A stretch of 64,000 nucleotides of DNA from Paragordius varius. Its lineage: Eukaryota; Animalia; Nematomorpha. The notes under the pieces are model-generated. The model was not told the DNA's origin, searched no databases, and worked only from the letters and a program-made list of their open reading frames with translations. The translations under genes and the position numbers were made by a program. Positions 167-61,547 of this stretch are shown one piece after another (within the stretch, counting starts at the first letter, position 1; every line of letters starts with the position of its first letter). The DNA lies in assembly GCA_964247055.1 (NCBI GenBank), contig OZ176060.1:1612001-1676000 (forward strand), written 5' to 3'.

Positions 167-256
167 TTGGTGGTAAACATTCACAAGTTTGGCATTGAAA
201 ATGGTCCATTTTGAAGCCATAGAGACAGGTGTTGACGCAAACAGGAGGTATGCATG
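167..256 (-). CDS. Exon encoding an antistasin-like six-Cys domain (TCIPPVCVNTCLYGFKMDHFQCQTCECLPP)
   Basis: Acceptor tttattgtttag|, donor a|gtatat, 90 nt, phase 1-1. The pattern C-x4-C-x3-C-x2-GF-x2-D-x3-C-x2-C-x-C matches the antistasin family. Confidence 0.9.
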
Positions 257-371
257 CTAAACAATAAAAATAAAGATTATTTGTATGTGAGAATTGCTAA
301 AAGATTAGTGTTATTGAAAAAATTCAATTTTATGAAATATTTTAACGTAAATGAATGGTTGATAAAAATAC

Positions 372-1436
372 TTTTGGTAATAGATGTAGTTGAAAGCATT
401 TTTAAGATATTTTCGCTACTTTTTATATTATCGGTTGGTATAAAACCAGTCATATTTATATGCTCGTTTATGGTAGATGTTAATAAGTTTGTTGTTGTTT
501 CAAATTTAGTTGTTGTATGGGTTAAGTTATTATAGGGAGTAGTAATATTTAGGGTTTCATTATTTAAAGGGGTTGATTTAATTGTTGTTGTGATATTTGA
601 AGATTTTGCTATAGATGTAGTAAATATATTTTGCCTAGAACTATGGGTATTAGAGGTGTTGTAATCTGAGTGTCCAGTTAATGTTATGTTTTCCTCAATG
701 GTCGTTAAAAGTGTTGTAGGAGAAGAGGTTGATGATACAGACCGCTCACTTGATACTGTAGGAGAAGTTACATTATTCATCGTATTTGCGGAAACAGTAG
801 TTATTAAAAGAGTTGTATTTAAAATTCGAGTGGTTAAACTAGATGCATTGAAAGGCGTGGTTGTATAAGTTGCATTTTTACTAATTCCCTCGCTAATTGT
901 GATAGAGGGATTTGAGTTTAATGTAGTGGTTATGGTGTGCGGTGTTAATGGAGTCGTTGTAATAGTAACTTCTGGTTTAAAAGGACTAGAGTGATTTAGT
1001 GTCACTTTCGGAATCGTTAAATTTATTCCAGGTGTTGTAGTGTTTTCAATTATTTTAAAAAATCCAGTAATGCTGGAATTTTCGTTGATTGTTGTTGTAG
1101 GGACAGACAATGTACTGCCCTGACTTACATTAAACCTATTTTTACCGGTGGGTGTGGGATTATATGAACTAATATTAGTGACAAAATAGCCTGTAACGTT
1201 AACTTGTTCGCTTATGGTAGAGTGTGTTTGCCCATTCGTCGTATTTTGTTCTTTAGGTGTTCGTAGAGTTGACTTTTCCCCATTATTAGTTTCGTTGTTA
1301 AACTGTAGAGGGGTGATTGAACTTGTTTTAAAAGTTGATATAGTACTATGATTGTTTGGAGGAACTGTGGTGACTTTTAAGGGTGTAAGTCCTGAAGGGG
1401 TGTTTAGCTCTACGATAAGAGAAATGCTGGTAGATT
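372..1436 (-). CDS. 1,065-nt exon encoding a Thr/Ser/Asn-rich mucin-like stalk (ESTSISLIVELNTPSGLTPLKVTTVPP...LSTTSITK)
   Basis: Contains ORF 277..1110 and stays open upstream to acceptor aaaactag| at 1436. The phase-1 donor a|gtattt at 372 joins the antistasin exon in frame across a 115-nt intron. Very Thr-rich with many N-x-S/T sequons. Confidence 0.9.
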
Positions 1437-1775
1437 CTAGTTTTTATATTGTAGAATATTTTAAATCGATAACATTTTAAAAATTATAGAAACACCTCTT
1501 AACTTTAAAAGGTGCAATATTAAATAAAATATTGTTTTAAAATAATACAGTTAAAATTGAAATCATACGGACAAAATGCAAATATATAAAGCAAAAATTT
1601 TTTAACAAAAGACAACCATACTTTTTTAAACCTTAATTTATCCTATAAAAAACATTTATTTATAATGGTAAAATACATAATTGAGTATGTTACCAATTTA
1701 CATTACTATATTATACTATGCATTTTAAAACAACGAGATATATTTAAAAAATTAAATTAAGATTCAAAAGAACGC

Positions 1776-2490
1776 CGCATTTTTTCAAGCAAAAGCACAG
1801 TTTTGTATAAAGTAGAAATTTTTTTAATATAAATAATTTAATATTAAGGATTCATTTAATTTTAAATTGATGATTATTTAATTTTAGCGTTGAATTATGA
1901 TTTTTAATGTTTTATTATCAATATTTGGTGGTAAAAAGATTATGTTCAAACATTTTGCCCATAACTTAATTCTATTATTTATTTTATTAATTCTATTTTT
2001 TTATAATCATGTTTATTTTCATTTATGAAAAATATTTTAATATTGGATTTGTATTTTAAGCAGAATTCCAAGAAAAAATTAATACTTGAAAAATTTACCT
2101 GGTTATGTTTGATACATGTGAAATATTAAACATCAAAATATTTGATAATAGATTGTTTATAGATTAAAGTTCAATATCAATTTAAAAATATTTTAAAAAT
2201 ACATAATAATAAAATTAAATTATGGACAAAATGTATGAACATAATTATTGTACCTATTGAAAATAACAATAAAAATCATAATTCAACTATCAATTTAACT
2301 AATCATTAATTTAAAGTTAAATGATACCTTATTATTAAATTTCTGAAATATAAAAAAATTTGTTACTTTTTGCAAAATGTTGCTTTTCTTGAAAAAATGA
2401 TATTTTGGTTGAAAAAATGATATCTTTGCTTGATGAAATGTTGCGTTTGCTTGAAAAAAAATATTTGCGAAAAAAAATTGTTTTTGACTC
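1776..2490. mobile_element. Foldback-like element with inverted arrays of a ~21-bp repeat at its ends
   Basis: The left end has tttttcaagcaaaagcaca-type units. The right end has aaaatgttgc(g)tttgcttgaaaaaa units, the reverse complement. The internal AT-rich core is shared with 37376..37950. Confidence 0.6.
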
Positions 2491-2566
2491 AAAAAGGATA
2501 TTTTGTTCTTTATTAAATTATAATTTTTTATGGTTCAACAATGTATTTATATACCATTTTTCAATT

Positions 2567-2690
2567 GTAAGCAACATTTTTTAACAAACCCAACACTTTT
2601 TCAACCAAATACAACATTTTTTTAACCAAACGCAACATTTTTCGTTCTGTTGGGATGGAAAATGTTGCGTTTGGTGTTGCTTTTGACTGA
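2567..2690. repeat. Short inverted pair of the 21-bp minisatellite (caacatttttt... / aaaatgttgcgtttgg)
   Basis: Four caacattttttcaaccaaa-type units are followed within ~15 bp by aatgttgcgtttggtgttgcttttg. Confidence 0.65.
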
Positions 2691-3476: not shown

Positions 3477-3572
3477 CAAGAGGAGTGCTTTTCGTGATTG
3501 GGGGGCGAGAACTGGCTGATGGAGGTGAGGTTGGTAATTCTACTATCAACGATACCGTTGTTGATGATTCAG
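3477..3572 (-). CDS. Ser/Thr/Pro-rich exon (TESSTTVSLIVELPTSPPSASSRPPITKSTPL)
   Basis: Acceptor atatacag|, donor g|gttatt, 96 nt, phase 1-1. Lies inside ORF 3418..3600. Confidence 0.8.
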
Positions 3573-5055: not shown

Positions 5056-5220
5056 TTGTCGTTAAATGCAAGGATCTAGTGGTGTTTGGCAAGTTAGATT
5101 CATTTTCATGGATCTCGGATGATCTGGTCAAAGTTGATAAATTAGGTGCACCTGATGGAGGGGAATTTGTTGTGTTTAGCGTTATGGTTGTATTAAACCA
5201 ATTTATTGGAGAAAAATCCA
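5056..5220 (-). CDS. Ser/Thr-rich exon (LDFSPINWFNTTITLNTTNSPPSGAPNLSTLTRSSEIHENESNLPNTTRSLHLTT)
   Basis: Acceptor ctacaaag|, donor a|gtgata, 165 nt, phase 1-1. A 123-nt intron separates it from the upstream exon. Lies inside ORF 5006..5242. Confidence 0.8.
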
Positions 5221-5343: not shown

Positions 5344-5524
5344 AAGGCGGAGGGGCATTGTTACATTTGTATTGGTAGTCGATGGGATAATAGGGTAGTA
5401 TTTCAAGTTCCCATTTTTCATTATTAGACATCTCAAAAGAAGCATTATTTAGCTGGTGAATAACAGATTTTTCTATGTTGTTGTGAAAACGTCTAACATA
5501 TCTGCCAATCTCTTTTCCATGCGA
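5344..5524 (-). CDS. Exon (SHGKEIGRYVRRFHNNIEKSVIHQLNNASFEMSNNEKWELEILPYYPIDYQYKCNNAPPP)
   Basis: Acceptor aataatag|, donor t|gtaaat, 181 nt open, phase 0-1. Not in the ORF track because it has no start codon. Confidence 0.85.
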
Positions 5525-6243: not shown

Positions 6244-6375
6244 CGTAATGGAGAATTCGAAATTGTAAAATTTTCTAATAGCGTTGTATCGTGTCAATGT
6301 CCGATAATAGATGTACTGAGCCGTATCGACATATTGGGATAAACGACTTTCATCATCTATCTCGTCTTTATTACA
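6244..6375 (-). CDS. Exon (CNKDEIDDESRLSQYVDTAQYIYYRTLTRYNAIRKFYNFEFSIT)
   Basis: Strong acceptor tttttccctacag|, donor acg|gtattt, 132 nt, phase 0-0. Fits in frame between the exons ending at 10864 and starting at 5524. Lies inside ORF 6187..6438. Confidence 0.7.
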
Positions 6376-6395
6376 CTGTAGGGAAAAATACTTAC

Positions 6396-6430
6396 GATTA
6401 GACTCTGTTTCTCGCGATTGCATAACACAT
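6396..6430 (-). CDS. Candidate 35-nt exon (xVLCNREKQSLI) immediately upstream of a 20-nt GT-AG interval
   Basis: Acceptor aatgtatag|, consensus donor c|gtaagt. Phase 1-0 in the only frame that joins the next exon after removing the 20 nt. Confidence 0.35.
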
Positions 6431-9637: not shown

Positions 9638-9689
9638 CTTATTTAAGAATCCCAATATTGTATGGTAGTACCATTTTTTATGCAAAAAC

Positions 9690-10290: not shown

Positions 10291-10863
10291 AGAATGATAA
10301 AAATTGAATTAAAATTTAATTAATACTTAATAATAAAATATCATAAGATAATATTTGGCCTGAAAATAAAATACATGTTGCCTAGCGAAATGTGGTGACT
10401 GAAAAATGGTTCTTACAATTACCTGGTGGTAAATTATATTTAATTGAGTTAATTATACACACTTTAACTGCATACTTTTCCTATTTATTTTTCAATCGAC
10501 CCATATATTTCATGTCTAAGCTAAGTTGTTTTGTAAAATATGTAAAAATTATTGTAAGAGACCTTGATATTTTCACTTGACACTTTAAACATAAAATTTT
10601 GTAAAAAAATTTAACAAAAAACTTTTATACCTGCAGGGATGATTATATTTCATATTATCGCACAAAATAGAAACATAATCATAACAAATTTGTATGTTAG
10701 GAGGAACTTGATATATAACCGTATTCTCTGTTAGTTTACTTGTTTTTAATTCGACACGGCTTGCACATTCATACAGGGTTTTATCCGCGACCTGACGCTG
10801 ACAATTTAAAAATCATTATTATATAAAAATTAATAAGGATTTGACAAAATTTTTTTTATTTAC

Positions 10864-11032
10864 CTTAACTACTAATTCAATAGTTTCATCCAAAGGGTGA
10901 CATTGGCACACTTTAATAACACGAGAAAAACTGAGATGTAACTGATTAAAGCGTCGCATAAAATAGCTGTGATCAAAACCATCACACGTTAAACGAATTT
11001 TCTTTTCAGTAGAATAAAGTTTAGGACTGCAG
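10864..11032 (-). CDS. Cys-containing exon (CSPKLYSTEKKIRLTCDGFDHSYFMRRFNQLHLSFSRVIKVCQCHPLDETIELVVK)
   Basis: Acceptor attgtacag|, strong donor aag|gtaaat, 169 nt, phase 2-0. Lies inside ORF 10819..11040. Confidence 0.8.
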
Positions 11033-12944: not shown

Positions 12945-13167
12945 CTATAATATTAGTTAATTCGGTGGAATTTTTAGTATTTCTAGCCCAGCCTCTTAGC
13001 ATTGAAAATAATTGATTTAATTGTTTATGAATTTCATTAGATCCAAATTTCGGGTCAATTGGTTCTTTTAAATCGCCTAGTTCACCTGCTAGTGGGCTCT
13101 CAAAAAAATGTTTCTTTGGTTTTCGCAATAATGCAAATCCTGGTACATGGTAAGAATCATCTATAGC
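12945..13167 (-). CDS. Exon (AIDDSYHVPGFALLRKPKKHFFESPLAGELGDLKEPIDPKFGSNEIHKQLNQLFSMLRGWARNTKNSTELTNII)
   Basis: Open frame extends ORF 12940..13128 upstream. Acceptor is tgtatttag| (13167, phase 0) or gctatag| (13160, phase 1). Donor g|gttaat is phase 1. Confidence 0.75.
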
Positions 13168-25850: not shown

Positions 25851-25939
25851 TCTTTAACAAGGCAAGTAAGATTATATTTGCGGGGATTGAAATCGTTTTT
25901 ATATAAAACATCAACTTCTGCCCACATGTAAGTAGCATT
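25851..25939 (-). CDS. Second half of ZP-N module 3 (NATYMWAEVDVLYKNDFNPRKYNLTCLVK)
   Basis: Acceptor attatatag|, consensus donor ga|gtaagt, phase 0-2. Carries the aromatic strand and the fourth Cys of ZP-N. It is in a different frame from ORF 25732..25938. Confidence 0.85.
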
Positions 25940-28980: not shown

Positions 28981-30999
28981 AATCATTTTATAAAATTTTT
29001 AGTTAATGTGAGATCGAACGTCTTAATTATTCCCCTTCTAAAGTGGGCCTATAAAATGAACGCATATACCGATATTACGTGATAAACATTTTAATATATG
29101 CTGGATTATGGCATCAAAAACATATTTTGAAAATTCATAATTTATTAAAAAAATTAATTTCTAGCAAAACTTTGTTGAATTATACATCATACTATTTCGA
29201 GGCGGAAAAAAAAGTAAACGCTTTCTATATTCGGATGATGAACATTTCTATCACCATAGAATTTTATTTTCGCTTTTCATCAAATTTAATTAAACATTTG
29301 TATAAAACAATTTAATTTAATAATAATTTGAAGACGAACGAATTTGTAATCGAAATTCTGAATAAGAGAAATGTTCAGCATCATTGATATATGTATAAAA
29401 AGTGTTGTTATAATATTTTAAAGTTTCCAATGCTTTTTCGCTAAAAATTAAATATTAGAAAATGAATGCATTTTTCAAAATTTTTATTGAATAAAATTTA
29501 TCTTGATCTCGCCATTTTGTCCTTATTTGTTAGAGAACTAGCCCAGCCGGTAAAAATAACTAAAAATGTTGTTTTGCTTTTAAAATATAGCATACGACAA
29601 AATATTTTTTGGAACATTTATAAAAAAATTAATTAGCATAATGTGAGAAAATTTTGCTATTTCCCGAATTTCCTGAAAAGTAAATAAATTTTTATATATT
29701 ATTTAAACCTCAAAACCAAAAGCACCATGATACTCTTGATACATTAATCCATATGATATTATATATTTCATCAGGATATTATTTACACCCTCGATTTTTG
29801 CGCAGTGTTAGATATTTTTATTATATATTTATATAATTAAAGGCATATTCTCCGCCTTATTCAATAAGTTCTTACTTTATAAAAACCCGCACCTCAGAAT
29901 TTTAATATAGGATACATCTAAAATTAAATGATTTTGTAAAACAATTTATATATAACATAAATCTAAAGATGAACAAATCAACACTTAGAAGTGATATCAG
30001 TGCTCAACAAAAAATTTCCTAAAATTAAATTTTAACAAAGTATGCTTGCGCTAATTATAAAGCCCCCTTAATAGGGGCACAAATTTAAACTTTCGCATCT
30101 TTTATTAAAAATATATTTATTATATAGCATAGCTTGGCAAAAGTTTTGTAACAAAGTATTCAAAAAATTTTTAACATAATATGCGCTATTGCGATTTTAC
30201 GACGAACAAATATTACAAAATTGCATATAACTTTCTTTTAATACTAGTAAGTACGTCAAAAACAACGTAGTACTAACTAATCTATCAGGATATATAGATA
30301 TATATTTCATCAGGATTTTAATCCCCCCCCCTATGATTTTGTGCGCATTATTATTCTTTATACTTATATTTATATGTATTATTCGGACATTCCATAAACA
30401 TTGCCGAAATATTTTATAATTTTATGAAATGTTTTGAAAATACCTTCCAAATTGCTGGACATTTTTGGAACAAAAATGTAGCCGTCAAATTGTACTGATT
30501 ATTGAACTCGGCGGGACATATATAATGGTTTTGTTTATTGTCCTTTAATACAACTTTCGCATCCACTGGTTTTTTATGAACAAATGTAACGATAAATCCA
30601 TCATCCTGACATTCTGTTTCAACTAGATGTATTGAAAAATAATTTAAAAACTTTAGTTAAAGTTTACGAAATTTATGTTCTTAAACTTATTAAAGTCATT
30701 AACGTTTAAAATCATGGTTTTGTAAATTTTCCGATAATATGATTATATTTAGGTTTTTTTCATTTATCACAAGTTATCTTTTAAAAGTTTACATTGATCC
30801 TGAAACATTTAATTAAAACTTGCTTACCTAAATTATATAAAGTATTTAACTTTTAGTGAACTATCTTTTTCATTCAAAATCAACATTTTCATCTAAAAAA
30901 AATTCTTAGTTTAGTTTTTCAAACATATTTTAATCAAGGACAACCTTAAAAGGTTTAAACAAAAATTTCGATTTAAATTTTCTCAAAGCCTGGTTTGAT

Positions 31000-34743: not shown

Positions 34744-36830
34744 TATATTAAAAGAGCAGCAGTTTAGTTTGATTAATGCCAAAAAATACAAATATAAAAA
34801 CGTAAATTCTTACTTTGCGTATTTTGAACCGACGGAATCGACAAAAAATCTGGAAAGTTTGACGTTGTCCACTTTCATATTTTAAATGAATCACATTTTC
34901 ATACCTTTCATCATCAATCTTATGTTTTTTTATGAAAAATAGATAAAAAAATTTTAACATTAATTAATATATTGTTTAATAAAGTTTGTGTCTAAGCGAT
35001 AAATTAAAAATTCTTTATATGTATGAAAAATTAAAAAAACAAATATTATTATTGTTTAAATATAACATTTTTAATTTATATAGGAAAATAATTATTATAA
35101 ATATGAATGTGGCCTTTAAGACATTTTTTAAAAAACTTTGGGCCCATTTGAATTTTCCCAGTTAAGTCCCACCTCTAAAAATATAGTGTTTTAAGAAATG
35201 AAGTCTCCTGAATACGAGACAATTTTCACATATTTTTATATTTTTTTGATGCGCCATACATAGTCGCTCACCTTTTTGATTGCATCGGTATTTACCCGCT
35301 ATCCCCGTAAAACGCCATTTTTGCAAATAATCCGACTAAAATGCAACAATGACTTAGTTTTGAGAGTTAGTCAGAAATTATCGGTATAAAGACAATTTTA
35401 CAGCGCTTTTGTTAAATTAGTAGAAAAGTCAGCTTTCTGCAAAATATAACACTTATAAATACATCAGGGCTTTAAATAAAATTTCGGAAAACACAACACA
35501 TAACTATTTCCATGAGGTCGCTGTTGAGACTTTTTTAATTAGCCACTGGTTGGGATTTTATCCTCTGTAAAAGGCTTCATCATCAAAAATAACGTGGCTT
35601 AGAAATGTTTCGCCCAGTTATAAGAGGTATTTATGAAAATTACCGCTTATTAGTTTTAAGTCAAATTCGCTTAAGTGCTAGTTTTTGGCTTTAATATGTA
35701 AATCTTTTTAAAAATATTTGAAAAAAATTAAAAATTATCGATATTTTGTGTTTGTAGTTATCCTTATGCTATATTTCAACAAATGATGTTTAGTTGATGC
35801 GTCTTTCTCTATTGTATTAATTTTATTTGACCTAATGTGTGCGACAAAAATGCCATTTAAATCGAGGTAATAGCAGAAACAAACTTTTCATCGATATTCA
35901 TTATCCTGAATATTTATTTTGGTGGCGGACATTGTAATAAAATGACAATCAAATGCGTGTATTATTAGAATGGCATGTATCTTTTTAAGAGCCTTGTACA
36001 ACACCATATATATAGAATAGTTTTTTACCAAAAAAATAAATGAAATTACAAAAGATTTCTTACAAAACATTTTGCGGCAAATATATTTTTTTACTGAAAA
36101 CACTTGCGCATTGAAAATAAATTAAACACACTGATTATTGATATTATACGGACAGCAATCTCGTTGAATAACGAATACAATTATGATTGCATTGTTAACC
36201 TCTTATTACAATAAAGAATAAAATTTATAACCGGCAAAAGGGATAAAATTATTTGGTCTAAAGAATCAAACCAAATTATAAGATGGTTTTAGTATTTGTA
36301 CTAACCGAGTGCCGCATTTTCAGCTGAAAAAAATCTGCAGCAGACATGAATTAATATTTTGATATATTGCAAGCAAGGGACTGTAAAAAATTAGCAGCAA
36401 CTATTTATTTCAATTTTTGCCTATTCTGTTGGCAATGTATTCAAAATCGCATATCTTATTAAACAATAAGTAAAGTTTATAAAAATTTTGAATTATATTT
36501 GCGGTTTTCTTCAATAAATTATAATTCTGGCCTTAGAATATACTTAAAAAATCTAATTTAATGGTTATATGTAGACTAAATATTTTGCCGAAATAATTAG
36601 TAGCGTTTTTTGCATAATATTATAATTTAAATATATAATTAGTTAAAAATAATATTTTAAAATGGATGATATAAATTTTTTAATTTTATTAATATATTTT
36701 TTTAAAATAAATTGTATATATTTCTTTTTTTTTTAATTTTCGTGAAAAAAATTGGGAGGGGCGGCGTGTTAGGCGCCTCTTATTTAAAATATAATATTCA
36801 TCTATATATTAATATAAAATAAGATTTTAC

Positions 36831-36991
36831 TTGTGTGCTATGACAGGTGTCAAAAGGGAATTTAAAATTGATTGCATACTTTTCTTTAATCTGCTTAACA
36901 CAAGAACCATTATTACCCATTATAGTCCCGGTAAAGGGTTGCCTAAATTGGAGACTAACTTCATGAGAATCAGGGTGGCATTTGGATACCA
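36831..36991 (-). CDS. First half of ZP-N module 3 (VVSKCHPDSHEVSLQFRQPFTGTIMGNNGSCVKQIKEKYAINFKFPFDTCHSTQ)
   Basis: Strong acceptor ttttttctatttttccag|, donor caa|gtaaaa, phase 1-0. Has the cuticlin-like C-x4-EV-x2-F-x2-PF-x-G-x-I...C...FPFDTC motif. Confidence 0.9.
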
Positions 36992-39800: not shown

Positions 39801-42800
39801 TTCAAATAAATGATATTTATTTATTGTATATTGTCTATTTCTATGTCGAATAACAAGCCCGAATAAGACGTTTTTCTCGTGCAAAAGATAGCAATCCTTC
39901 AGCAGCGATTTTGGTCAGTTTTATTTTAATATAAAGATCGACAAAATTTTTATCAAGTTCTATTATATGAATCATCAATCGTTAATAAAAAATCCTCCGT
40001 GGTATCGTACACCAAGACAGATATATTTGGCTCATTTGCATTTTTGTTCTAAAATTATAATGAAAAACCTGGCTTTGGAATACCACTAGTGCTCGTTCAA
40101 ATATTTAACGAGGAATAATTGTTTTGTAAAATTAAATACAAAATTAAATTTAAAAAAATCGGGTTTGCGGCCTCATTTTTTTTTGTTTTAGCCTTTACAT
40201 GCCATTAGGTTACAGAAATGCAAAAAATGGGGTGGTACAAAACCTTGTTTATATATTTTTAAAGTGAATTATATACATTATATGGAAAATCAAAGTTTAA
40301 GAACATTGGCGTCTAAAAAAATATGCGGCTTTAAGTTTTGTGTTGAGCACCCCTGATTTAAGGTATTGGGCCAAATTTAAAATATTTTTAGCTTTTTGGC
40401 GCATTCTTCAAAATTTAAAAATGTAATAATATTTCTCATAAATGCCAAACGCTTCAATCCAAAAAAATATTTTTTAAATTTATCACAAACTATAAAATAA
40501 ATATATATAAAATTTTGGAACAGAAAGAAAATTAAATGGGCTAGTTCGTAAAAGTGCGAAGCAAGTAATAATAAATGTATGACTTTAAAGGATATTATTA
40601 AAAAAAATCATTTTTATAAAAAATTTTTTTAATTACCTTAGAATTTATACATCGTCTTGAAATGTACAAATATTTTATATTTTCAACCTATATTTGAAAG
40701 CGAAATTTTTATATTTGAGCTGAGTTAATAGAAATGATCATCATTAAATTATATAGAATAAATGTTATTTATAATACTTAAAGGTTGTCATAGAGTCACC
40801 ACTCTCTTTTAAAAGGTATCATTTTATAGATATAAAATTAACGAATCATTGCTTTTTTGCATTAATTATAACAAAACTACATTCTATAAATTAAATTAAG
40901 CAAAATATCGAATTTTTTGGAAAAAAAATTAATCCCATAATTTTTATACTTATTTTTATCGCGCAACCTCAGGATTTTATTTTTATTAAAGAAATTACCC
41001 ATTTTAGTAATTAAAAACTTAGGGCGTACAAAGCCCACACATCCTATATTAAAAACTTTTACCGCTAACAACCAAAAGCACCAGGATTTTTCTAATAAAT
41101 TATCAGTATCGCATAATTCATCAGGATATTATTTATACATTCCATTTTGTGCGCTGTGTAATTTAAAGTATCAATGTTTTACGTTATCGATACACTATTG
41201 GGATATTATATGTTTATTTTTAAATGTTAATAGATAAAAAAAAGTTTGAAGAGGCTAATAATATTTATTTATTATGCATACTTTTTGGTCTGGGCTCCAT
41301 ATTCATCTAATAATAAATATTAAATATGCATTTAATGAAATATATTCTATAGACAATTTTTCATGAAAAACGCGCACACAATGACATTCACTTGGATACA
41401 ACACATTCATTTTTGTCCTTCGATTCGAATTGGGTTAGTTAATACCCCAGACCTGTTTAAAACTAAATTCTTTAAAAAAATATGGAAGGAATCGAAACCA
41501 TGGCAAAATCTTGCACTTATAAAAAAAAATTATTCAAAAATACTTGATATTACTTATTTTAAGCTAAAATCGAAAAGTAAAAATTTAGTCAATGTGACAT
41601 GTATGCAATGATAAAATTGGAAATCAATGCAAAATAAACCGCTTTTTCTATTTCTATCAATATTAGATGTAATTTCAATAAAAAATTAGCTTTAATTTTA
41701 CCTTTAAAATTAAAGGTAGACGATATTTTACAAAAATTTTGTAAAATAAAAATGGCGTCGAAGTAGTTTGACATGGAACTTTTTTTTCAAAACAAAATAT
41801 TTAGATATTTTGGCATATTTATATAATTTTTATTAGGAGATAAGCATAAATTTAAATTGTGAACGTTTCCTTCAGTAGTTTTTTAAAAATCCTAACTCAA
41901 ATTTTGTCAAGGGTATTTAGATACCCCAATTTGAATCAAAGTGTTAAATATCAAAACATTTTGTAAAAAATTAATAATATTTTACTTTCATCATTCCAGC
42001 AGTGCAAACAGAAAATAGGCTTAGTTTATTTGAATAGCCCTTAAACATTCTTTTGGGATATTCAATTATCAAATCTATCCTATATCCAGTAGAATCCTAT
42101 AATAAATAATTATTTAATGATAATAACTATAACCATGATTTAATTAACAAAATAGAGATTTAAGTTTTAAAATTTAATATTAATGGCTAATTATAAAAAT
42201 GTTAGTGTTTAACGTTAAAATAAAGAGCCTGGAACAATATGAATCTATTAAAACTCGATATAAAATTCACAAAATTTATATATTATAAATTTGATAAAAT
42301 GCAAATTAAAATAGTTAAATTTATATTTCCTCTCAAATAAAAATCATTTATATTTATATTGGTAAATATGCGCGTTCTGATTCGGTGCATATTATCAAAA
42401 AATTCTTGCTCATAGTCATAAATAATTTTTTAAAGCCTGTTAACCTTATTTATCAACACGATATTCATTATTCTGAAGCTTTTAACGATAGGTTGATAAA
42501 CGTATATCTTTGCTGCGCACCTTATTATAGAATGAAAAATAAAACTAAAATTTGTCTTTTGGTAACCGTTTTATTGGCGTATAAATTGCTAATTTGTTAC
42601 AATTAAATTTATTATTATATGGCATTTGTCTAAATTACAGATTTAATAAGTTTTACTTTAATTAAAAATCAAAATGGAAAGACACTTTCCCATTTTTGAT
42701 CTAAATTCTTAAAATTTCAATGTACGCAATTTTCAATCAATTGCATTTATATATCCTAATTATTGTTAATACCTTAATAGTTCCACATCTTCTTTGAGGA

Positions 42801-43040
42801 ATTTCCCATAAAACAATGTTGCTGTAATTTACAGGCTTTATACATTCATTATTTTTTGTCAAAATTCTGCCCTTGAAACTGTAGATAAAATTGAATCGGA
42901 AAACAAAGGAATCTTTGGTGCATTTTAATTCGACTATAATAATAATTTATATTTAATATGCAAAAAACATTTTTGTGGTTGTTATATATTTAATAAATAC
43001 TGTTTTGTTTAAACACTCGAATATACATTTTTAATGGATA

Positions 43041-43068
43041 TATATATATATTATATATATATATATAT

Positions 43069-43100
<32 letters not shown>

Positions 43101-43101
43101 A
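43041..43101. repeat. Interrupted (TA)n microsatellite
   Basis: TA runs separated by periodic extra T residues. Confidence 0.95.
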
Positions 43102-44041: not shown

Positions 44042-44133
44042 TATAACATTAAATTTAATGATATAATCCGAAAATTGCATTATTTATTTGTAATATTTTT
44101 TCCTCTACAATTTTAGTACCAAATCAATCTATA

Positions 44134-44921: not shown

Positions 44922-45129
44922 ATTCAACATTTGTCTTCGGTGACATTTTATTGATTGGTTTCTTCGTACGATTGAAAAATGTGGAATTTTTACCCTCAAA
45001 ATAATCGTTAAGATCCACTTGTCCACCTTCAATACTTGTTTGTTCCTCTTCAAAAAAATCTTCTCCATGAGAACCTGAACCTATCAGTTGTTTGCCGCTA
45101 GCTGTTATATTTCCGATTTTATCAATCCA
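44922..45129 (-). CDS. Acidic Gly-rich linker exon (WIDKIGNITASGKQLIGSGSHGEDFFEEEQTSIEGGQVDLNDYFEGKNSTFFNRTKKPINKMSPKTNVE); boundaries ambiguous
   Basis: A long open frame different from the one in ORF 44883..45068. Acceptor is at 45129 (phase 0) or 45101 (phase 1). Phase-1 donors at 44994 (g|gtaaaa) or 44922 (t|gtaatt) both join the 36991 acceptor. Confidence 0.65.
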
Positions 45130-45908: not shown

Positions 45909-47943
45909 CTGGTAAGTGGCCTTTATTTTTCGTTTCATTTAAATTTATAGGACCACCATATTGAATTCTATCTTTTGCATTTCTGTAAGGCAGTGTAGAA
46001 TTTAATGGCAGAAACCAATTATATACCAAATGATTTTCCATGTAAATATTACGAGGTTGGCGTATTTTTCTATTGGAAATCGGATTACTCGCGTCACTTT
46101 TCAACGATGTTTGAAGAGTGGGCGAAAAATATGATATTAAAGATGATTTAATTTTTTTGCTGATAATTGAAACAGGGATATGATTTTCTGGAAGAAAATC
46201 AATAGTTCTGGCATTATAATTTTTATCACGTTTATAGAGTTTCAATGAATTTCGCTTTTTGTCATCATCAATGATATCATAGTTAATTAGTGGTTGTTCT
46301 ATATATTGTTTTTTTCCTTTGAATTTATAATTAATTTTGTGAACAATTCCTTTAACTTTCCTACTTTTCACCTGGGATTTCTTCCTCTGCTTGGAAAATA
46401 TTTTTATATTCTTTTCTACATTATAACGGTTTTGCATATTGATACGTTCTGGTTGTGAATCCTCATATATAGATGCAAATCCTTGTTTATAATGAAGGGT
46501 TTTAACTCGTTTCTTTTTGCCGATACCTTTGTGTCTTATATACATTTTCATTTTGGCTAAATCATTTGTTTTGTTGTGTATATGATGCGAATTCATAATA
46601 TCCAACCTATTCCTTATTTGATTGGTAATTTTTAAATTATCTATTTGCGCTGTCATATGAATCTTTTGCTTATTAAAATGGCATAAAAATGATAATAACT
46701 TTTCTCTTTCCTCCTGTCCCATATTTTCAATGGATGCCAAAATATCATCTTTGGATTTCTTAATTGAGTATAGCCTACTCATCAAATCATTTTCGTGCAA
46801 AGACTTATCACAAATTAATTTAATAAGGCTGGAAAACAGTGCAAACTTTTTAGTATTCAACCAATTAAAAAAAGAGACGTATTGTAGAGTTTCATTGTGC
46901 TCCAAATAAAACAAAAATATTAACCACTTTAAAACTAACTGGTCACTCAAATTAATGACACCTTTTGATATTTTTTTCCTTATTTCGCTATTTTCTACAT
47001 AAGATAATATAATATCGGGAATTTTAATAGTGATTTTGTTGGTATTTGTTTTATTTTCAAAAATAATGGTTAAGGTGAATAAATTTTTATGCATGTAAAC
47101 ATTATGGTTACCATGTTTTGAGCGTATATCCATTTCTTCACCGCCACTATTGTATTTTACTGAATGATTAGCATATATGTGATTGCTTCTAGTCAGGGTA
47201 TAATTTTTGTTATAAGAATGCCCAGAAGAAGCGAACATTTTTCCATGTCCCTCTGTAATAACAGTTTCAGCATTGTTTTCAGGGTGTAAAGTTAAATTAT
47301 CTGTGTCGACTCTAAGTGGGTGATTATTATATAAAAAATCTTTTGTTTCATTGAACTTCTTTTTAGGTATTTTTAAAGCACGAGTCGTTTCTAGCACCAA
47401 ACTGGAAAATTTTATTTCATTGAAAGAGCCCCCTGCTGGCTTATTATCATTAATTATTCCTGTATTGCTTGATTTATTATTTGCGTGTTTCAAGCTATAT
47501 GCCTTAAAACCTGTAGGAGATAAAGTAGACTTGCTCGAGGTCACCAAATTCTGTGTTTGAGTTTTTAATGATGGTACTGTAAACACTATTGTACCAAGAT
47601 AATTCACGAATACATTATTATTATTATTACTATTTTTCGGATTTAATTTATTATAAGTATTCTTGTCGATATTAGTTACTGCTTGACCTTCTTTATCGAA
47701 AACCAGATAAGAGTTGGGATCGATTAACATTTGATCATTTTGGTTAGAATTTGGGAAAATTCGTTTTGGCTCCTCCTCTTGCCATTTTGCATAATCGGTT
47801 CGGATTTCGTTAAGCCCTGACGAAGGCGTCCCTTTAACGTTAAATGTTTCGATTGGACATTCTCCTGTGTAATAGAGGCGGTATGCATAAGAGGAATCCG
47901 TTGATTTCAGCGTAAAATTGTAGGTGTAAAATGGTTGATGTTT
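45909..47943 (-). CDS. 2,035-nt exon: second half of ZP-N module 2 (KHQPFYTYNFTLKSTDSSYAYRLYYTGECP) followed by a ~650-aa Lys/Asn-rich region
   Basis: ORF 45832..47730 stays open upstream to acceptor ttttgtag| at 47943 (phase 0). Consensus donor cca g|gtaagt at 45909 (phase 1) precedes the ORF stop. Confidence 0.9.
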
Positions 47944-50899: not shown

Positions 50900-53010
50900 A
50901 AAATAGTTTAACAATAATAAACACCTTTTATAAAAAAATCGGAATAAACATATGACTCAGTAAACCACAAATTTATGATTGATTTGTTCTTGACAAAGAA
51001 AAATCAAAGAAAACATCCCACTAATGGTTAACCAATATACGAACTGCAATTAAACCGCAAACTGATAGTCTTAGTAGACACAACCTTAACATGTCTTAAG
51101 CTAAAATCTCCAGACGACCGAATCATCAGAATATCTGACATAAGATGTTTACAATAAAAAACTGACAGATGTCGCGGAGAAAACGGCCAAATTGTAATCT
51201 CCCATAACTGAAAACTTAAAATAAACTTTAATCTTAGACCGACTTGGAAAAAAAACTTATATTCATGAAGTTGAATGTTTAGTGGGGAAAAAATTAATAA
51301 AGGTATTCCAAAAAAATATTAATTTTGGTGGAACAATAAAGTGTTAGAGCATATAATACCGAAAAATTTGGCACATAACATTTGGTTTAAGGAAAGGTCA
51401 CCATTACAATTGTATCTAGAATCCAAAAATTTATGTCGAAAAATTATCAGGGCAGCCAAAAATGAAGAAGCTCTAAAGTATGCGAAAGAAATCGATATAA
51501 AAACTAAAAAACTGTATATACATGGGCTATTCAGATATCAATACCGCTTTATTCACAATGAAAAATAAATAACTCCCTGGCCCTTCTGAGCTCCCAATCG
51601 ACATGCTTAAATTTACCGACCCTCAGATTATCAGCTCATATCTTACAACTTTTTTCAATATAATAAAAGACGAAAAAATGCTAGCTGACTGCGAAAACAG
51701 CCATATCATACCCATATAAAAAAAGGAGACCCTCTCCTGCCCAAATCCTACCGGACAATAAAACTAGATCACAATGAAAGTGTATGAAAAATGCATTTAA
51801 AAATGCAATGCGGCTTCCAGCCAAACAAAAGTACAATAAATGCCATATTCACGTTAAGATAACTTTAAAGCGCATACATTAAAAAGCTTTTATACTACGT
51901 TTTTCTTGACATGGAACGAGCCTTTGATGCCATTCTAAGAGACCTATCATGGGCTCTTAGACGTCAAGACATTGACGAATGGCTGATAATTTCAATAATG
52001 CTCTTATACCGAAATACCAGAGCCTAATAAGCCAGACTCTTCAATGTCATTCTGAAATAACTAAAGACTCCGCAACCGGCATGCCACACCAAATACTTTA
52101 TGTCGACGAACTCGTAATAACAACGACCGAAAGCGATCTCATAGCAAAAATTCGTTTTTGGAATAGCACCCTACAAAGTTACGGACTAAAAGTCGATTTC
52201 TCAAAAACTGAATTAATATCGATAATTACACCCCTAAAACCCGTGTAGCATATGTAAAAAAGAAGTTAAATCAAACTCAGTGAGCTGTAATTTTTGTTCT
52301 TTATGGGTACATAAAAATATAGTATTCTCATAACTCTAAATGACTACGATAAAAATTACAAATGCTCGGGATGTTTAAAAATAATAACATCAATAATTTT
52401 CAACAATCATCTCATTTTCCAGCCCTTTCATATAATAGTAAGCACTTTCTACTTGGGCGATATGATATCAGCCGGTAGTGAAATAAAACATGCAATTAAA
52501 CAATGCACATCACAAATGTGAAAAAAATACCATTTGTTAAAAATAAATAATAATAAACTACAAACTATGTGTGCCATGTTTACACAACAGCCATTTGTCC
52601 CGTCCTCACATACGGATCCGAATCCTGGCTAATGTCAAAACAAACGAATTCAAACTCAGAAACGCTGCCAAATTACTGAAAACAATATTATTCGCACCCA
52701 ATCTATCTAAATTCAATTATACCGAATCCATAAACCCGTATCCTATCAATCTCAACCCGATTAACAACGTCATCTGGAATCTCCGGTTACATGGGCTCGA
52801 CATGTTGAGAGACGGCAAGATAGCCATATCCTTTTAACTATAAAAATTACTCGGTTTTAACTATCAACCAAATCCGGTCTACATCTTGCCACTTAGCTCA
52901 ACACAATAACAAAAGACCTCGAATCGCTTAGTTTAAAACTAGATTTAGCCAGATCAAGAAAAGGGAAAAAATTAACGGGTGTACTGTCATTATCCCTATA
53001 CAAATGATAA
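50900..53010 (+). mobile_element. Decayed non-LTR retrotransposon (RTE-like) RT region
   Basis: Motifs include PGPSELPIDMLK, IIPI-KKGD...SYRTI, QCGFQPNKST, FLDMERAFD, LYVDELVI, GLKVDFSKTE and RLHGLDMLR. Confidence 0.85.
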
Positions 53011-53039
53011 TGAATGATGATGAACTTTGTGAGAATTTA

Positions 53040-53900
53040 TTTAAATTATTATTCGTCGGCTTGTACCTATTTCGTCCATCTCACAGGTAGGATATAAATG
53101 CCATGCCGAAAAGCTGATTGTCTTTTGCAGCAAATTGTTTCGTAAATTCTATCCCGAATCAATATTATTGATGTGCTACTCTGCTAAGTCTGCCCTATTG
53201 GTGCGTAGATGTATTAGGCAGAGGCCAGGTTATGATATTGATGCTAAAGATTTTTGCGATTTTAAGGCTTACACTGGTTATGCTGCGTAAAAAACATTTT
53301 TATACGACACAATCATTTTTTTCTGGCTCATTCCGGGTTTTTTTCGATTAATGCATCTTTTTAAGGTAATTGTTAGCGATATAACGATTTCGCCTACCTC
53401 AAATTTCATACCGCTTTGATTCACCAGACACACAGTCTGGTTTTTATGCCAAAGCAATTTGGTCTAATTGTAGATGGAACTTGACAGGGTGAAAATTGCG
53501 ATTTTTCCGCTTTGGATTAGAATGATTTCTCATTAGCCTTGTGATTTGGTTCCTTTCATATGTGTGGAACCTTTTTACCGAGTTCATTGGTTTGTTTCAT
53601 TGCTCACAGACGTCTATTAATTATTTTGTGTGATATATCTAATGCTTTTGCCAAATGCTTTTGAATTAGAAAGGTCATCCAATACTCTTGCAATCTTCTA
53701 CGCAATTGTGTAGTCTACCAGAGCGCCCACTCTCTTTCATATTAAAATTAAAAGTGATTTGAACAGCCATGTTATAAAAATGTGGTGCTTTTTGGCGGAT
53801 TTAATTTTTTATGTGTTTGCACATTAATGTCAGATAATGTTTATTTTCGCTAACATCTTCTGTAATTTCCGTAACGATATATGACAACATCTTTTAAATC
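53040..53900 (-). mobile_element. Decayed mariner-type transposase
   Basis: Motifs include ESGRSGR, LDISHKIINRRL, ELGKKVPH (WVPHxL motif), KTRLCVW and ALIEKNP, with multiple stops and frameshifts. Confidence 0.75.
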
Positions 53901-55388: not shown

Positions 55389-55525
55389 TTTGATATTTTT
55401 TCGAGCGTGTGTTGATTGATCGCTACCGGTAACTTATCAGGACTTTTGCAGAAAAATGAATACATTATACGCCATTCATTCGTACTTGATTCAATTATAA
55501 TCGAATTACGGTATTCATCTTCAAT
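55389..55525 (-). CDS. Last part of ZP-N module 1 (IEDEYRNSIIIESSTNEWRIMYSFFCKSPDKLPVAINQHTLEKIS)
   Basis: Acceptor ttggtgtag| (phase 0), donor aa|gtaata (phase 2; alternative ccg|gtagcg is phase 0). Has the Y-x-N-x-hydrophobic strand and fourth Cys typical of ZP-N. Confidence 0.85.
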
Positions 55526-58866: not shown

Positions 58867-58944
58867 AAATAAGTAGACATTTATTAATAATTAGATAATA
58901 AATTATAATTTTAAACCATCTTGAACAAATTATTAAAAATTTAC

Positions 58945-59098
58945 CTGTTTTGTATTACATGATTCGAATGGAACAATTAGATTACTAGAGGTAGCATTAG
59001 TTATTTTATTTTCACATCCTGTTGCTTTGGGATCTAACAATTCTTCGTCTACATTGTTGCTGTTTTTAAAAATATATACATTTTTGAGTTCCAAAATC
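58945..59098 (-). CDS. Middle of ZP-N module 1 (ILELKNVYIFKNSNNVDEELLDPKATGCENKITNATSSNLIVPFESCNTKQ)
   Basis: Acceptor tttttatataag| (phase 2), strong donor cag|gtaaat (phase 0). Carries Cys2 and the LIVPFESC Cys3 motif. Confidence 0.85.
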
Positions 59099-60139
59099 CT
59101 TATATAAAAATCGATTATTATTTTTAATTATATATGTTGCTCATCTAAAATGAAATAAATATTATAACTAATTGAGTGGGTAACGACGAGAGTTTGTAAT
59201 GTAAATGATGTTAGAATCGTCGTAAATTAACGCAAAAATAAAATATAATTTATTAATTCTCAAATTTTCGCCATAGGTATCATCAGGAGATTAGTTAAGA
59301 ATAATATATATAATATAAGATAATAAAAATTAAATTAAAATTTAAATTTAAAAAAGCCAAAAAACCCTGTTATAAAGCGGTTCATTCCTTTATGGTTAAA
59401 CAAAAATATTTTTTGATATATTAATTTTAAGCAGTGTTCACTAATTAATGTAAAGGACTATCGCTCCTCATTAATTTTTAATATATATAAAATTTTAAAA
59501 CCATATAAACCAATTGCTATAAATTTAATAAGTGTATTAGGATAAATATGTTGATACTGGTATTGTTACAAATAGGTGTGTTGAGAGTGACAAACCCCCA
59601 TATATAAATTTAATTCGAAACAAAATATATGAGATTATATGTGGTCAATTTCGCATTATATTAATAAAGACTTAAAACTATTATATTAATATATTTAAGT
59701 CTCCAAAATTGACCTCTTTGTGGATTGAATGCAACTAAAATTACTAATGCTTCCATTTAAGTTTAAACGCTTGAAATCATTTATTTATTAGTTGTATTGC
59801 TGCCTGATATTTTAACTTAATTTGATTACTAATAATTATATTTTTTCTTTTTTGGGTTATATCTCGGTAGAGCATCCTTAACCTTGATATGGGAGTTTGC
59901 TGTTACTTTAAATCGTTACACTTAAATACTTTAGATTTGTTTTTATGTATTTTATAATATTTGTTTGAATAATGCGTTTTCATTTTTTAATATTATAATC
60001 ACACGATAGCAGTGAGCCTAAAACTTTTATTATTACTTCTTTGATTTAAAATAATTTAAAATTTTAATAAATAAAATAGTTTAATTATTATATAACACAA
60101 CCAAAAAAATTTAAAAATATATATATTATGATAAAAAAA

Positions 60140-61100
60140 TCTATCAGGATTTCATGTGCAGTTGGTTTTGGACCTTATGTGTGATTTAATAAAGTTAATA
60201 TCATTTTTATGGTAAATGCTCCATATCAGAACATATTAAAATCTGCAAGCATTTGTTTTAAAATTTTTTAGTAAAGTTATATTCCCAAAATATAACTAAA
60301 ATATATCATAATATTATAAAAAGTATATTTTTAAAACATTTAATTTAAAGATGTGGGCTCCGAAGGTCCCAAATTTTTTCGCGTTACTAAAATGGGCTAT
60401 TTCTCGTAAAATAAACGTAAATATGCCATTACGCTAAAAAATCGTAGATATATACTAAATTTTAATGAACTTAAAATGTTTTTTATAAGCATATTTTTAA
60501 AAATTTATTTATCTTGTTGCATCCTAATTTTTTGAAGCATTATGAAAAACTATAAAAATGCGTTAATATATTATAAATGCGATATTACTTAATTCACTAT
60601 GCTGAACATTTCCATCGATTCAGAATTTTTAAAGGTTTGTCTTATTTTTAACATAAATTTGAAGACGAGTTAACATTTTAATCAAAATTCCGAGGTGATA
60701 AAAAGCTAGCTTTTATCGAATATATAAACGAAGGGTTTTTTCATATCGTATAGCGTTTCTATTCCATTTCCGTCATGCCTCAGATTATGCAGTACACTTC
60801 AACAAAATTTCACTAAAAATTAAATTTCAATTCATTTTTTAAATAATTTTAATTATTTAAATTTATCATAAATTTTCCGTTTCTTTTACGTAATTCACCC
60901 ATGGACTCTCCACATCTAAAAAAAATTTTTTTTAATATATTGTTTGCTTTTTATATTACTTATGATATATTAGTAAAAATATTTTAAATTTTTGGCTTTA
61001 ACCAAAAACAAAATATATTTGTGAAAACGTGCTCAAATTTTGTCATTTTTATATGGAGCACGTTTCTATTTAGGTCTCCCCATAATGAAAATTTTAAACA
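60140..61100. mobile_element. Decayed long-TIR palindromic element
   Basis: aaagatgtgggctcc / aaaagtatattttt (60320-60360) appear inverted at 60900-60960. The centre resembles 29160..29400. Confidence 0.5.
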
Positions 61101-61420
61101 ACTTAAATTGGTCGTTGGGTATACTTCCAGCTTCTGTAAAATAGGCTATCATAGATACATAGCATGGGGAAGCAACATTTAAATAGGAGGATGTGTAATA
61201 TCAATAATGATTTTAGCTATTTCCCGTAAAAAATTTTGTCCCGGCACCTTTTTTAAATATGTTTAATTTCTTGTATGCTACGTTACTTATTAGCTATGCA
61301 AATTATGAATGGTGAATTATTCTATCCAACGATTAGAAAACTATATTTTTGACAATAAATTTTACACATATTTATATGCTTTTATTAATATTAAATTATT
61401 TATAATTATAAATTAATAAC

Positions 61421-61547
61421 TTTTTTGTCTTTCTGACATTAGTTTCGTTTGAGGTTGATTGGCCAGCAACAGTAAATATTCGACCAGTAAACGCTTTTTG
61501 GAAATCCGCAAAAACTTGCATTCCGGAATTCAGACATACACCATACA
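61421..61547 (-). CDS. Start of ZP-N module 1 (xYGVCLNSGMQVFADFQKAFTGRIFTVAGQSTSNETNVRKTK)
   Basis: Acceptor atattttatag| (phase 1). The C-x3-GM-x-V-x2-F-x-K-x-F-x-G-x-I motif is cuticlin-like. The phase-2 donor aa|gttatt joins 59098 in frame. Confidence 0.8.

Follow-up and report, generated by a model that had tools for sequence, protein, structure and literature searches.

Does the minus strand of this stretch of Paragordius varius DNA carry one hidden gene of more than 60 kb, and what would such a gene encode? The window, i.e. the whole stretch of 64,000 nucleotides that was analysed (contig OZ176060.1, positions 1,612,001 to 1,676,000), had been predicted to contain phase-compatible exons that together spell a filament-forming or ligand-binding matrix protein. 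The reading favoured here, with a probability of about 0.5, is that of a real, unannotated, exon-poor minus-strand locus for one or more secreted, glycosylated extracellular-matrix proteins composed of ZP-N modules of a divergent cuticlin type.

Exon map and openness of the reading frames

Twenty-one minus-strand exons with AG/GT borders were mapped across the very AT-rich window. The exons of the original prediction, including those with the outermost ends at 61547 and 167, are all present on this strand and have such borders. The intervals separating the exons are filled with minisatellites, a repeat of high copy number and remnants of decayed retroelements, which is what introns would be expected to contain.

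Open frames of 40–90 codons are frequent in the window, which would be consistent with the exons being no more than chance openings in AT-rich DNA. However, at 0.0755 stops per codon the 703-codon open frame at 47943-45835 (minus strand) has a chance probability of ~1e-24 and the 388-codon Thr-rich open frame at 1443-280 (minus strand) one of ~6e-14, and the longest frame seen in 100 shuffles was 176 codons; hence neither frame is due to chance. The repeated architecture of the modules and the Pfam matches described below argue in the same direction. Chance is effectively refuted by the frame lengths beyond those of the shuffles, together with the nine of nine in-frame junctions of the 3' unit, and is given a negligible probability.

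One further exon-like piece was noted.

12945..13167, minus strand: 74-codon open piece flanked by good splice sites, entered in phase 0 and left with 1 spare base

It is compatible with no exon chain and belongs to no Pfam family, and an Atlas search with it gave unnamed clusters only. The locus was found in none of the runs on record as RNA, and nothing from two assemblies of this species that may be RNA-derived mapped to 41960-47959.

Candidate first exon

61596..61728, minus strand: candidate first exon with an ATG at 61728 and a second ATG at 61704, followed by a hydrophobic signal-peptide-like stretch

This exon ends with 1 spare base before a weak GTTAAT donor (score -0.5) and is in phase with the exon starting at 61547, from which it is separated by a 48-nt intron. 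Its hydrophobic stretch is the strongest among all minus-strand ATG-ORFs, in DNA so AT-rich that hydrophobic ATG-ORFs are fairly frequent (~1 per 7 kb). Judged from these features, 61728-61596 is a candidate signal-peptide-like first exon, and its position directly upstream of 61547 argues against a gene that extends farther upstream. At the other end the coding sequence passes the window start at 167. The exon at 61728-61596 was not part of the original prediction.

Four ZP-N-like modules

61421..61547, minus strand: module 1, exon a, with Cys1 and an F-x-G-R-I motif, starting in phase 1
58945..59059, minus strand: module 1, exon b, with Cys2 and Cys3, ending in phase 0 five residues past Cys3
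55389..55525, minus strand: module 1, exon c, with Cys4, a strong GTAATA donor and 2 spare bases
42773..42933, minus strand: module 2, exon a, with Cys1-3, ending C-G-T-I-K; 161 nt, in phase with the large exon
41986..42096, minus strand: module 2, exon b, with Cys4, a GTAAAA donor and 0 spare bases
36831..36991, minus strand: module 3, exon a, with Cys1-3
34814..34918, minus strand: module 3, exon b, with Cys4, a GTAAGA donor and 0 spare bases
30444..30622, minus strand: module 4, exon a, with Cys1-3 and an alternative acceptor at 30650
25851..25939, minus strand: module 4, exon b, with Cys4, a GTAAGT donor and 2 spare bases

Where three ZP-N modules had been claimed, four ZP-N-like ones are present; the one overlooked is module 2 (42933-42773 + 42096-41986). 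The modules span two or three exons each. All four contain exactly four Cys in matching places within some 90-115 residues, with Cys1 near the start and Cys4 in the last exon. Each of them begins in phase 1 and is interrupted by a phase-0 intron 4-5 residues past Cys3. Exon a of module 2 has the same length of 161 nt as the exon at 36991, and module 2 is similar to this exon of module 3 (tblastn E = 2e-4).

The modules were compared with the ZP-N-type Pfam families PF23344 (ZP-N, cut-off 24.7 bits) and PF25057 (CUT_N, cut-off 27 bits). CUT_N was matched by spliced module 1 with E = 0.012 (16.5 bits) and by module 4 with E = 0.05 (14.5 bits). Exon a of module 3 alone matched ZP-N with E = 0.041 and CUT_N with E = 0.048, and the spliced module 3 (36991/34918) matched ZP-N with E = 7e-4 (20.3 bits) over profile positions 1-100 of 101. 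The Pfam search with module 2 gave no match, and the profile scores of the other three modules are all under the curated cut-off. Except for a weak KH look-alike, the Pfam matches of these three modules are confined to the ZP-N clan and cover corresponding parts of the profile. PDB sequence searches with the modules gave no match. No database homologue of the modules was found, so there was no alignment for structure modelling; a single-sequence AlphaFold2 model of module 3 had a mean pLDDT of 39.7.

The ZP-N identity is therefore favoured by the consistent clan matches in three modules and weakened by the sub-cut-off scores and the lack of any match for module 2. The proposal of a matrix protein agrees with the secreted, Cys-rich character and the matrix-type modules. 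The sub-cut-off scores and the lack of a match for module 2 would also fit some other four-Cys extracellular fold, or an array that is partly decaying and silent, as would the failure to find a homologue or to find the locus in any RNA run. A protein-language-model search with one exon pointed to KH domains (score 0.87, a lead only), but a cytoplasmic RNA-binding domain is ill-suited to a four-Cys module behind a signal peptide. Moreover, three independent modules match the ZP-N clan only, at matching positions, and the exons are all open, with four Cys kept per module and intact splice sites. Another fold or a decaying array is thus regarded as very unlikely, and the assignment of the modules to a divergent cuticlin-type ZP-N, weakly ZP-N-like in sequence, as partly supported.

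Large Lys/Asn-rich exon

45909..47943, minus strand: large Lys/Asn-rich exon of 678 codons with acceptor ttttgtag, donor CAG/GTAAGT and 1 spare base
44994..45129, minus strand: Gly/Glu/Asp-rich exon of 45 codons between top-ranking splice sites, entered in phase 0 and left with 1 spare base

The large exon encodes 12% Lys and 11% Asn, and its open frame continues to a stop at 45832. A search of 1.84 billion representative proteins gave no homologue of it, nor did it have a Pfam family or an Atlas match, and its region has single-copy depth in DNA runs. Modules 2 and 3 can both follow this orphan exon in phase; its join to module 2 is in frame and gives 769 aa. The phase of the exon at 45129-44994 fits module 2, not the preceding large exon.

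The 3' unit

10864..11032, minus strand: Cys-rich region, exon 1, with 4 Cys including C-x-C
10631..10797, minus strand: Cys-rich region, exon 2, with 4 Cys
6244..6430, minus strand: Cys-rich region, exon 3, with 2 Cys
5344..5524, minus strand: Cys-rich region, exon 4, with 1 Cys and a GTAAAT donor
5056..5220, minus strand: Thr/Ser/Asn-rich stalk, exon 1, phase 1 at both ends
3477..3572, minus strand: stalk, exon 2, with an opening motif S-L-I-V-E-L common to stalk exon 3
372..1436, minus strand: stalk, exon 3, 355 codons
167..256, minus strand: antistasin-like six-Cys unit, C-x4-C-x3-C-x10-C-x2-C-x-C, with 1 spare base before GTATAT

Module 4, the Cys-rich region, the stalk and the knot are joined in frame at all nine junctions to give 795 aa with no stop. 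The Cys-rich region (11032-5344, minus strand; 235 aa, 11 Cys), which had gone unmentioned in the original prediction, is sited between module 4 and the stalk. Its first Cys follows Cys4 of module 4 by 4 residues, there being no interdomain linker. Neither the single exons nor the spliced halves of the 235 aa after module 4 gave any Pfam match, to ZP-C or to another family, although a very divergent ZP-C could escape such a search, and no ZP-C was detected within the window. Hence, a complete polymerising ZP module, with ZP-C directly after ZP-N, does not appear to be encoded.

The stalk comprises 442 aa with 23% T, 14% S and 7% P, no Cys and 26 N-x-S/T sites; this composition, the absence of Cys and the number of sequons bear out its description as a mucin-like Thr-rich stalk. 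Stalk exon 2 is related to 1434-1342 (tblastn E = 0.007). The internal similarity of the stalk is weak (tblastn 3e-9), and TRF at score 60 found no tandem repeats in 372-1436.

The predicted six-Cys antistasin motif was confirmed at 256-167, just over the Pfam cut-off for PF02822 (22.2 versus 21.2 bits, E = 2e-4, profile positions 2-26 of 26). The 1 spare base before GTATAT indicates that the coding sequence passes the window start.

Joining of the exons

The phase compatibility that had been claimed holds only within blocks. If the strong donors are used, the phase breaks where 55389 is spliced to 47943 (from module 1 into the large exon) and again where 41986 is spliced to 36991 (from module 2 into module 3), and at neither place was a convincing linker exon found. 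A stop-free chain of 17 exons and 1,714 aa could be rebuilt, in agreement with the predicted length of more than 1,700 aa, but it skips module 2 and requires two very poor donors, CCG/GTAGCG (score -3.1) and TCC/GTCGGT (score -6.3), both of which are under the median of all GT sites. Stronger donors (scores 6.2-6.3, top 1.5%) sit a few codons downstream of the two weak ones, and the acceptor at 30650 joins 34814 to module 4 in frame, replacing the second weak donor with a strong one. As far as the coding sequence runs before leaving the window at 167, the 1,714-aa chain has a hydrophobic segment only at its N-terminus and contains no R-x-K/R-R site.

The existence of this chain is consistent with a single linear gene exceeding 60 kb, in which all predicted exons from 61547 to 167 are joined to encode 1,700 aa with three ZP-N modules. 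So is the lack of a signal-peptide-like start of their own in modules 3 and 4 and the large exon, which calls for an upstream start. Such a gene is unlikely, given that it needs the two poor donors despite the good ones adjoining downstream and leaves out both the intact module at 42933-41986, in phase with the large exon, and the well-formed exon 45129-44994. The locus was, in addition, in no run on record as RNA.

The phase breaks coincide exactly with the boundaries between units that could instead be two or more tandem genes. In that case 61728-55389 would encode a small secreted single-ZP-N protein, the 632-aa ATG frame 47730-45832 would perhaps stand alone, and a 3' gene would run from before 36991 or 30650 through the stalk and knot. 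The signal peptide and module 1 make up an ORF that is complete, running from the ATG to a stop one codon on when exon c is left unspliced at 55389, and a weakly signal-peptide-like ATG exon at 45212-45131 (minus strand) is in phase with module 2. The last exon of every module, when unspliced, likewise reaches a stop within 0-21 codons, but these stops prove nothing, since a stop is expected anyway just past a GTAA-type donor. Against separate genes, a search for a start or signal-peptide exon of modules 3 and 4 and of the large exon found none. Furthermore, the very first codon of the large exon adjoins a consensus acceptor, and the exon ends in a perfect CAG/GTAAGT donor whose phase fits the module that follows; such borders are odd for a stand-alone gene. 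Tandem genes are therefore considered possible, at clearly less than even odds.

For the favoured locus of matrix-protein exons, the chances are roughly balanced that the pieces belong to one transcription unit with its start near 61728. The out-of-phase joins would then reflect unrecognised small linker exons or alternative module use. Modules 2 and 3 are possibly mutually exclusive, as they have the same phases and a first exon of 161 nt in both.

Comparison with known proteins

The egg-coat proteins ZP2 and ZP1/ZP4 of mammals and VERL of abalone are secreted glycoproteins that carry serial ZP-N modules, which serve for binding and not for filament formation. The locus resembles them in having several, here four, four-Cys ZP-N-type modules in series. 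However, the egg-coat arrays precede a complete ZP module with ZP-C, cleavage site and membrane anchor, none of which was detected in the locus. In contrast to ZP2 and VERL, the modules are also parted by long introns and the orphan 678-aa Lys/Asn-rich region, and they show too little sequence similarity for any PDB match. An architecture of the ZP2/VERL type, with ZP-N repeats N-terminal to a full ZP module, thus does not appear to be present in the window.

Cuticlin-type ZP proteins of nematodes and arthropods (CUT_N PF25057 and ZP-N PF23344) are the only Pfam families approached by the modules, which share with them a V-x-C start, an F-x-G-x-I motif, C-G-T at Cys3 and a hydrophobic-x-C at Cys4. 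A cuticlin has a single ZP-N with a ZP-C after it, whereas the locus has several sub-cut-off ZP-N and no ZP-C was detected in it. Should 61728-55389 be a separate gene, its product would resemble the stand-alone ZP-N proteins of the PLAC1/OOSP1 type, by its architecture alone, in having a signal peptide, a single ZP-N and nothing more. For the ZP modules of nematodes, one study reports ZP-C domains that stand alone, and a search of its text by terms turned up no ZP-N arrays (PMC7456536).

Without a ZP-C, cleavage site or membrane anchor, none of which was seen as far as the window reaches, classical ZP polymerisation would not be expected. The ZP-N modules would more likely dock onto other ZP/cuticlin filaments or onto ligands, the stalk may act as a hydrated spacer, and the C-terminal knots could confer stability or, possibly, protease inhibition.

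The six-Cys unit shares its Cys spacing and a G-F-x-x-D motif with the antistasin-family inhibitors (PF02822). The family consists of small free inhibitors, whereas the part of the locus inside the window shows a single unit of 26 residues, with no assignable reactive-site loop, as the tail of a large matrix protein. In the literature search, ZP and antistasin domains were met in separate, interacting shell proteins and not in one chain (PMC9290575).

The stalk is similar to secreted mucin-type stalks in being rich in T, S and P, free of Cys and supplied with 26 sequons, and differs from them by the absence of a clean tandem repeat and by its high content of Asn and Ile. Both residues are abundant in the stalk as in everything in this genome.

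Exons and open reading frames of the locus

The minus strand was read around each place for which an exon had been claimed, and the borders were then set by script. The exons of the original prediction do exist as pieces bounded by AG and GT, of which the minus strand carries 21. Open frames of 703 codons (47943-45835) and 388 codons (1443-280) are far longer than chance allows (P ~1e-24 and ~6e-14, respectively, at a stop fraction of 0.0755 per codon); the longest frame in 100 shuffles of the sequence had 176 codons. Frames of 40-90 codons are abundant in the window, and hence the small exons are individually non-significant, while as a set they are significant. The parts of the locus, all on the minus strand, are as follows.

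61728-61596, minus strand: candidate start exon
61547-61421, 59059-58945 and 55525-55389, minus strand: ZP-N-like module 1
47943-45909, minus strand: large Lys/Asn-rich exon
42933-42773 and 42096-41986, minus strand: ZP-N-like module 2, absent from the original prediction
36991-36831 and 34918-34814, minus strand: ZP-N-like module 3
30622-30444 and 25939-25851, minus strand: ZP-N-like module 4
11032-10864, 10797-10631, 6430-6244 and 5524-5344, minus strand: Cys-rich region, between module 4 and the stalk
5220-5056, 3572-3477 and 1436-372, minus strand: stalk
256-167, minus strand: antistasin-like exon

An ATG at 61728 (with a second at 61704) lies immediately upstream of 61547 in the frame of module 1, and the stretch that it opens is more hydrophobic than any other part of the chain. 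The one stop codon between this frame and module 1 is removed by a 48-nt GT...AG intron that keeps the split codon, and the segment 61728-61596 looks like a candidate first exon encoding a signal peptide. Its donor, GTTAAT, is weak and is of a type present at two other exons of the locus. If this exon is real, the gene begins inside the window. No convincing signal-peptide exon was found for modules 3 and 4 or for the large exon.

The large exon comprises 678 codons (12% Lys, 11% Asn, 3 Cys). Its first codon directly follows a consensus acceptor, and a perfect CAG/GTAAGT donor lies 77 nt ahead of the stop of the frame. It has no recognised relatives: phmmer with the 703-aa frame gave 0 matches among 1.84 billion representative proteins, no Pfam family was matched, and an Atlas look-alike search gave nothing usable. 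Downstream of it, at 45129-44994 on the minus strand, lies a 45-codon exon rich in Gly, Glu and Asp, whose splice sites rank among the best 0.5-1.5% in the window. This exon is in phase with module 2 and out of phase with the preceding large exon, to which it may be an alternative.

ZP-N-like modules

Three ZP-N modules had been proposed; modules resembling ZP-N were found, but they number four. All four open in phase 1, their first two bases completing a split codon, and each has a phase-0 intron 4-5 residues past the third Cys, with the fourth Cys in the last exon. Duplication of an exon pair would produce such a shared layout. The first exons of modules 2 and 3 are equal in length (161 nt), and that of module 2 is the best internal match of that of module 3 (tblastn E = 2e-4). 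Comparison with Pfam gave the following matches.

Pfam matches of the ZP-N-like modules
Module 3, first exon alone: ZP-N, E = 0.041, 14.6 bits (cut-off 24.7)
Module 3, first exon alone: CUT_N, E = 0.048, 14.6 bits (cut-off 27)
Module 3, spliced: ZP-N, E = 7e-4, 20.3 bits (cut-off 24.7), profile positions 1-100 of 101
Module 1, spliced: CUT_N, E = 0.012, 16.5 bits (cut-off 27)
Module 4, spliced: CUT_N, E = 0.05, 14.5 bits (cut-off 27)
Module 2, spliced: no Pfam match

Because all scores lie below the curated cut-offs, they do not formally place the modules in the ZP-N family. Three independent modules nevertheless approach one clan, that of ZP-N, at corresponding profile positions with these sub-threshold scores. 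The sole competing family is a weak KH look-alike arising from a G-x-x-G-like stretch, and an Atlas search with one module exon likewise gave KH look-alikes, below lead level. The modules probably adopt the ZP-N fold. An AlphaFold2 model of module 3, computed from the single sequence without an alignment, had a pLDDT of 39.7, too low to be of use. A word-indexed search for homologues of spliced module 3 gave no candidates, and searches of PDB sequences with a single module and with a profile of the four first exons gave chance matches only.

Cys-rich region, stalk and antistasin-like exon

The Cys-rich region (235 aa, 11 Cys) matches no Pfam family; as a candidate ZP-C domain, 11032-5344 likewise receives no support from Pfam. 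Within its exon 6430-6244, a 20-nt GTAAGT...CAG stretch at 6404-6385 (minus strand) resembles a micro-intron, but its excision would create a stop codon, and it is therefore read through.

The three stalk exons encode 442 aa rich in Thr (23%), Ser (14%), Asn (11%) and Pro (7%), with 0 Cys and 26 N-x-S/T sites. The antistasin-like exon 256-167 has the six-Cys spacing of the family and scores 22.2 bits against a Pfam cut-off of 21.2. Its end leaves one spare base followed by GTATAT; hence the coding sequence runs past position 1. Protease inhibition by the six-Cys knot, for which the basis is one threshold-level motif, is conceivable but rather unlikely.

Continuity of the chain

Joining the exons at their borders gave four blocks.

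Blocks joined in frame
Start exon through module 1: 3 of 3 joins in frame
Large exon through module 2: 2 of 2 joins in frame, 769 aa
Module 3: 1 of 1 join in frame
Module 4 through Cys-rich region, stalk and knot: 9 of 9 joins in frame, 795 aa, 0 stops, chance ~(1/3)^9

Module 3 would further connect in frame to module 4 from its strong donor via an acceptor at 30650, which ranks within the best 21% of AG sites and is on par with other accepted acceptors of the locus. Two joins fail. The strong GTAATA donor of module 1 leaves two spare bases and the large exon begins on a full codon; module 2 leaves 0 spare bases and module 3 requires one.

The locus had been described as one gene of >60 kb. 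A single chain of 1,714 aa, presumably the one seen originally, can indeed be rebuilt, but two of the donors required score -3.1 and -6.3, against 1.7-7.5 for accepted donors and a median of -0.4 over all GT sites on the same matrix. Module 2 and the well-formed exon 45129-44994 are left out of this chain. Linker exons were sought by enumerating all AG...GT frames of the required phases, and their coding scores were at chance level (e.g. 32696-32675); no micro-introns that would mend the phase breaks were found. A further open piece of 74 codons at 13167-12945 (minus strand) has good splice sites at both ends and resembles coding sequence in composition, with no Pfam family and only unnamed clusters in the Atlas (scores 0.92-0.93). 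It was rejected as a member of the chain since its phases fit nowhere between 25851 and 11032.

The two broken joins could instead mark borders between separate genes. No start exon was found ahead of the large exon or ahead of modules 3 and 4, which argues against fully independent genes. Modules 2 and 3 have identical entry phases, exit phases and first-exon lengths, and either could stand between the large exon and the acceptor at 30650; thus, they may be mutually exclusive. With exclusive use of these modules, the sole poor site needed is the join of module 1 to the large exon. The locus would then encode one secreted hairworm protein that has ZP-N without ZP-C, carries mutually exclusive two-exon cassettes at 42933-41986 and 36991-34814, and closes with an unassigned Cys-rich domain followed by a mucin stalk and antistasin-like knots, a reading to which we assign a probability of roughly 20%.

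No run recorded as RNA was found to carry the locus, and two possible RNA assemblies of the species placed nothing on 41960-47959, a segment chosen because it spans the acceptor, donor and stop of the large exon, exon 45129 and module 2. Runs under two other organism labels (X3 and X4) gave low-depth 151-nt contigs identical to the window over this segment. It seems that DNA of the same species is present in both, whether as host, mixed sample or mislabel, and the identical contigs hence offer no divergence by which conservation across species could be judged.

Possible function and relation to known proteins

In the ZP modules of cuticles, egg coats and urinary or ear matrices, ZP-N is the half responsible for polymerisation and binding. 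Polymerisation depends on a cleavage step and on a ZP-C with its internal and external hydrophobic patches, while extra ZP-N repeats serve binding, as in ZP2 and VERL. The predicted product of the locus combines a signal-peptide-like start, disulfide-rich ZP-N-type modules, a glycosylatable Cys-free stalk and a small six-Cys knot; within the window, neither a ZP-C nor a furin-type site nor a second hydrophobic segment was found. By analogy, a role in docking or cross-linking within a ZP/cuticlin-based matrix is more likely for this product than filament formation. The ZP-N modules would dock onto such a matrix, and the stalk would act as a spacer.

Stand-alone and repeated ZP-N domains are already known, and arrays of them that lack ZP-C have been described chiefly in egg-coat receptors. 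To our knowledge, the matrix proteins of the hairworm phylum are unstudied and nothing molecular is known of its cuticle or egg matrix, for which the locus would supply a first candidate component. If the proposed reading is true, cuticle or egg coat would contain a docking or cross-linking protein that has ZP-N only and in which the choice of binding module is built in, and a ZP-C-less ZP-N array with mucin stalk and Cys knots in a horsehair worm would mean a further reuse of ZP-N among animals. In a search of the literature, ZP and antistasin domains occurred only on separate shell proteins that interact with each other (PMC9290575). Stand-alone ZP-C is reported in a survey of the ZP modules of nematodes, in which a search by terms gave no ZP-N arrays (PMC7456536). 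Full-text searches for Nematomorpha with cuticlin, or tandem ZP-N repeats with cuticle, found no paper.

Surrounding sequence

The GC content is 23-31% along the whole window, most of which looks non-coding, and a whole-window search gave no tRNA and no Rfam family. The exons are small, lie far apart in ~25% GC DNA and lack homologues in databases; automatic annotation is likely to overlook or fragment them. Runs of (AT)n are present, and six dispersed places carry short tandem arrays of one 20-21-nt unit (approximately AAAATGTTGCNTTTGGTTGAA) that probably belongs to a small dispersed element. A high-copy repeat at 43160-44160 lies within a putative intron; contig depth there climbs from below ten into the hundreds or thousands in two DNA runs, with numerous variant copies and internal joints.

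2374-2642, 9686-9808, 10213-10282, 16930-16988, 37370-37437 and 44594-44650, both strands: 20-21-nt minisatellite arrays
20900-23600 and 27500-28500, minus strand: decayed non-LTR retroelement pieces, weak Pfam matches, stop-broken frames
51000-53800, plus strand: decayed non-LTR retroelement piece, weak Pfam matches, stop-broken frames

The matches of the retroelement remnants are to a Pfam endonuclease/reverse-transcriptase family (E = 0.014) and to RVT_1 (E = 0.005), both weak. One remnant contains a C-rich run at 21045-21103 (minus strand) that reads as poly-proline in all three frames.
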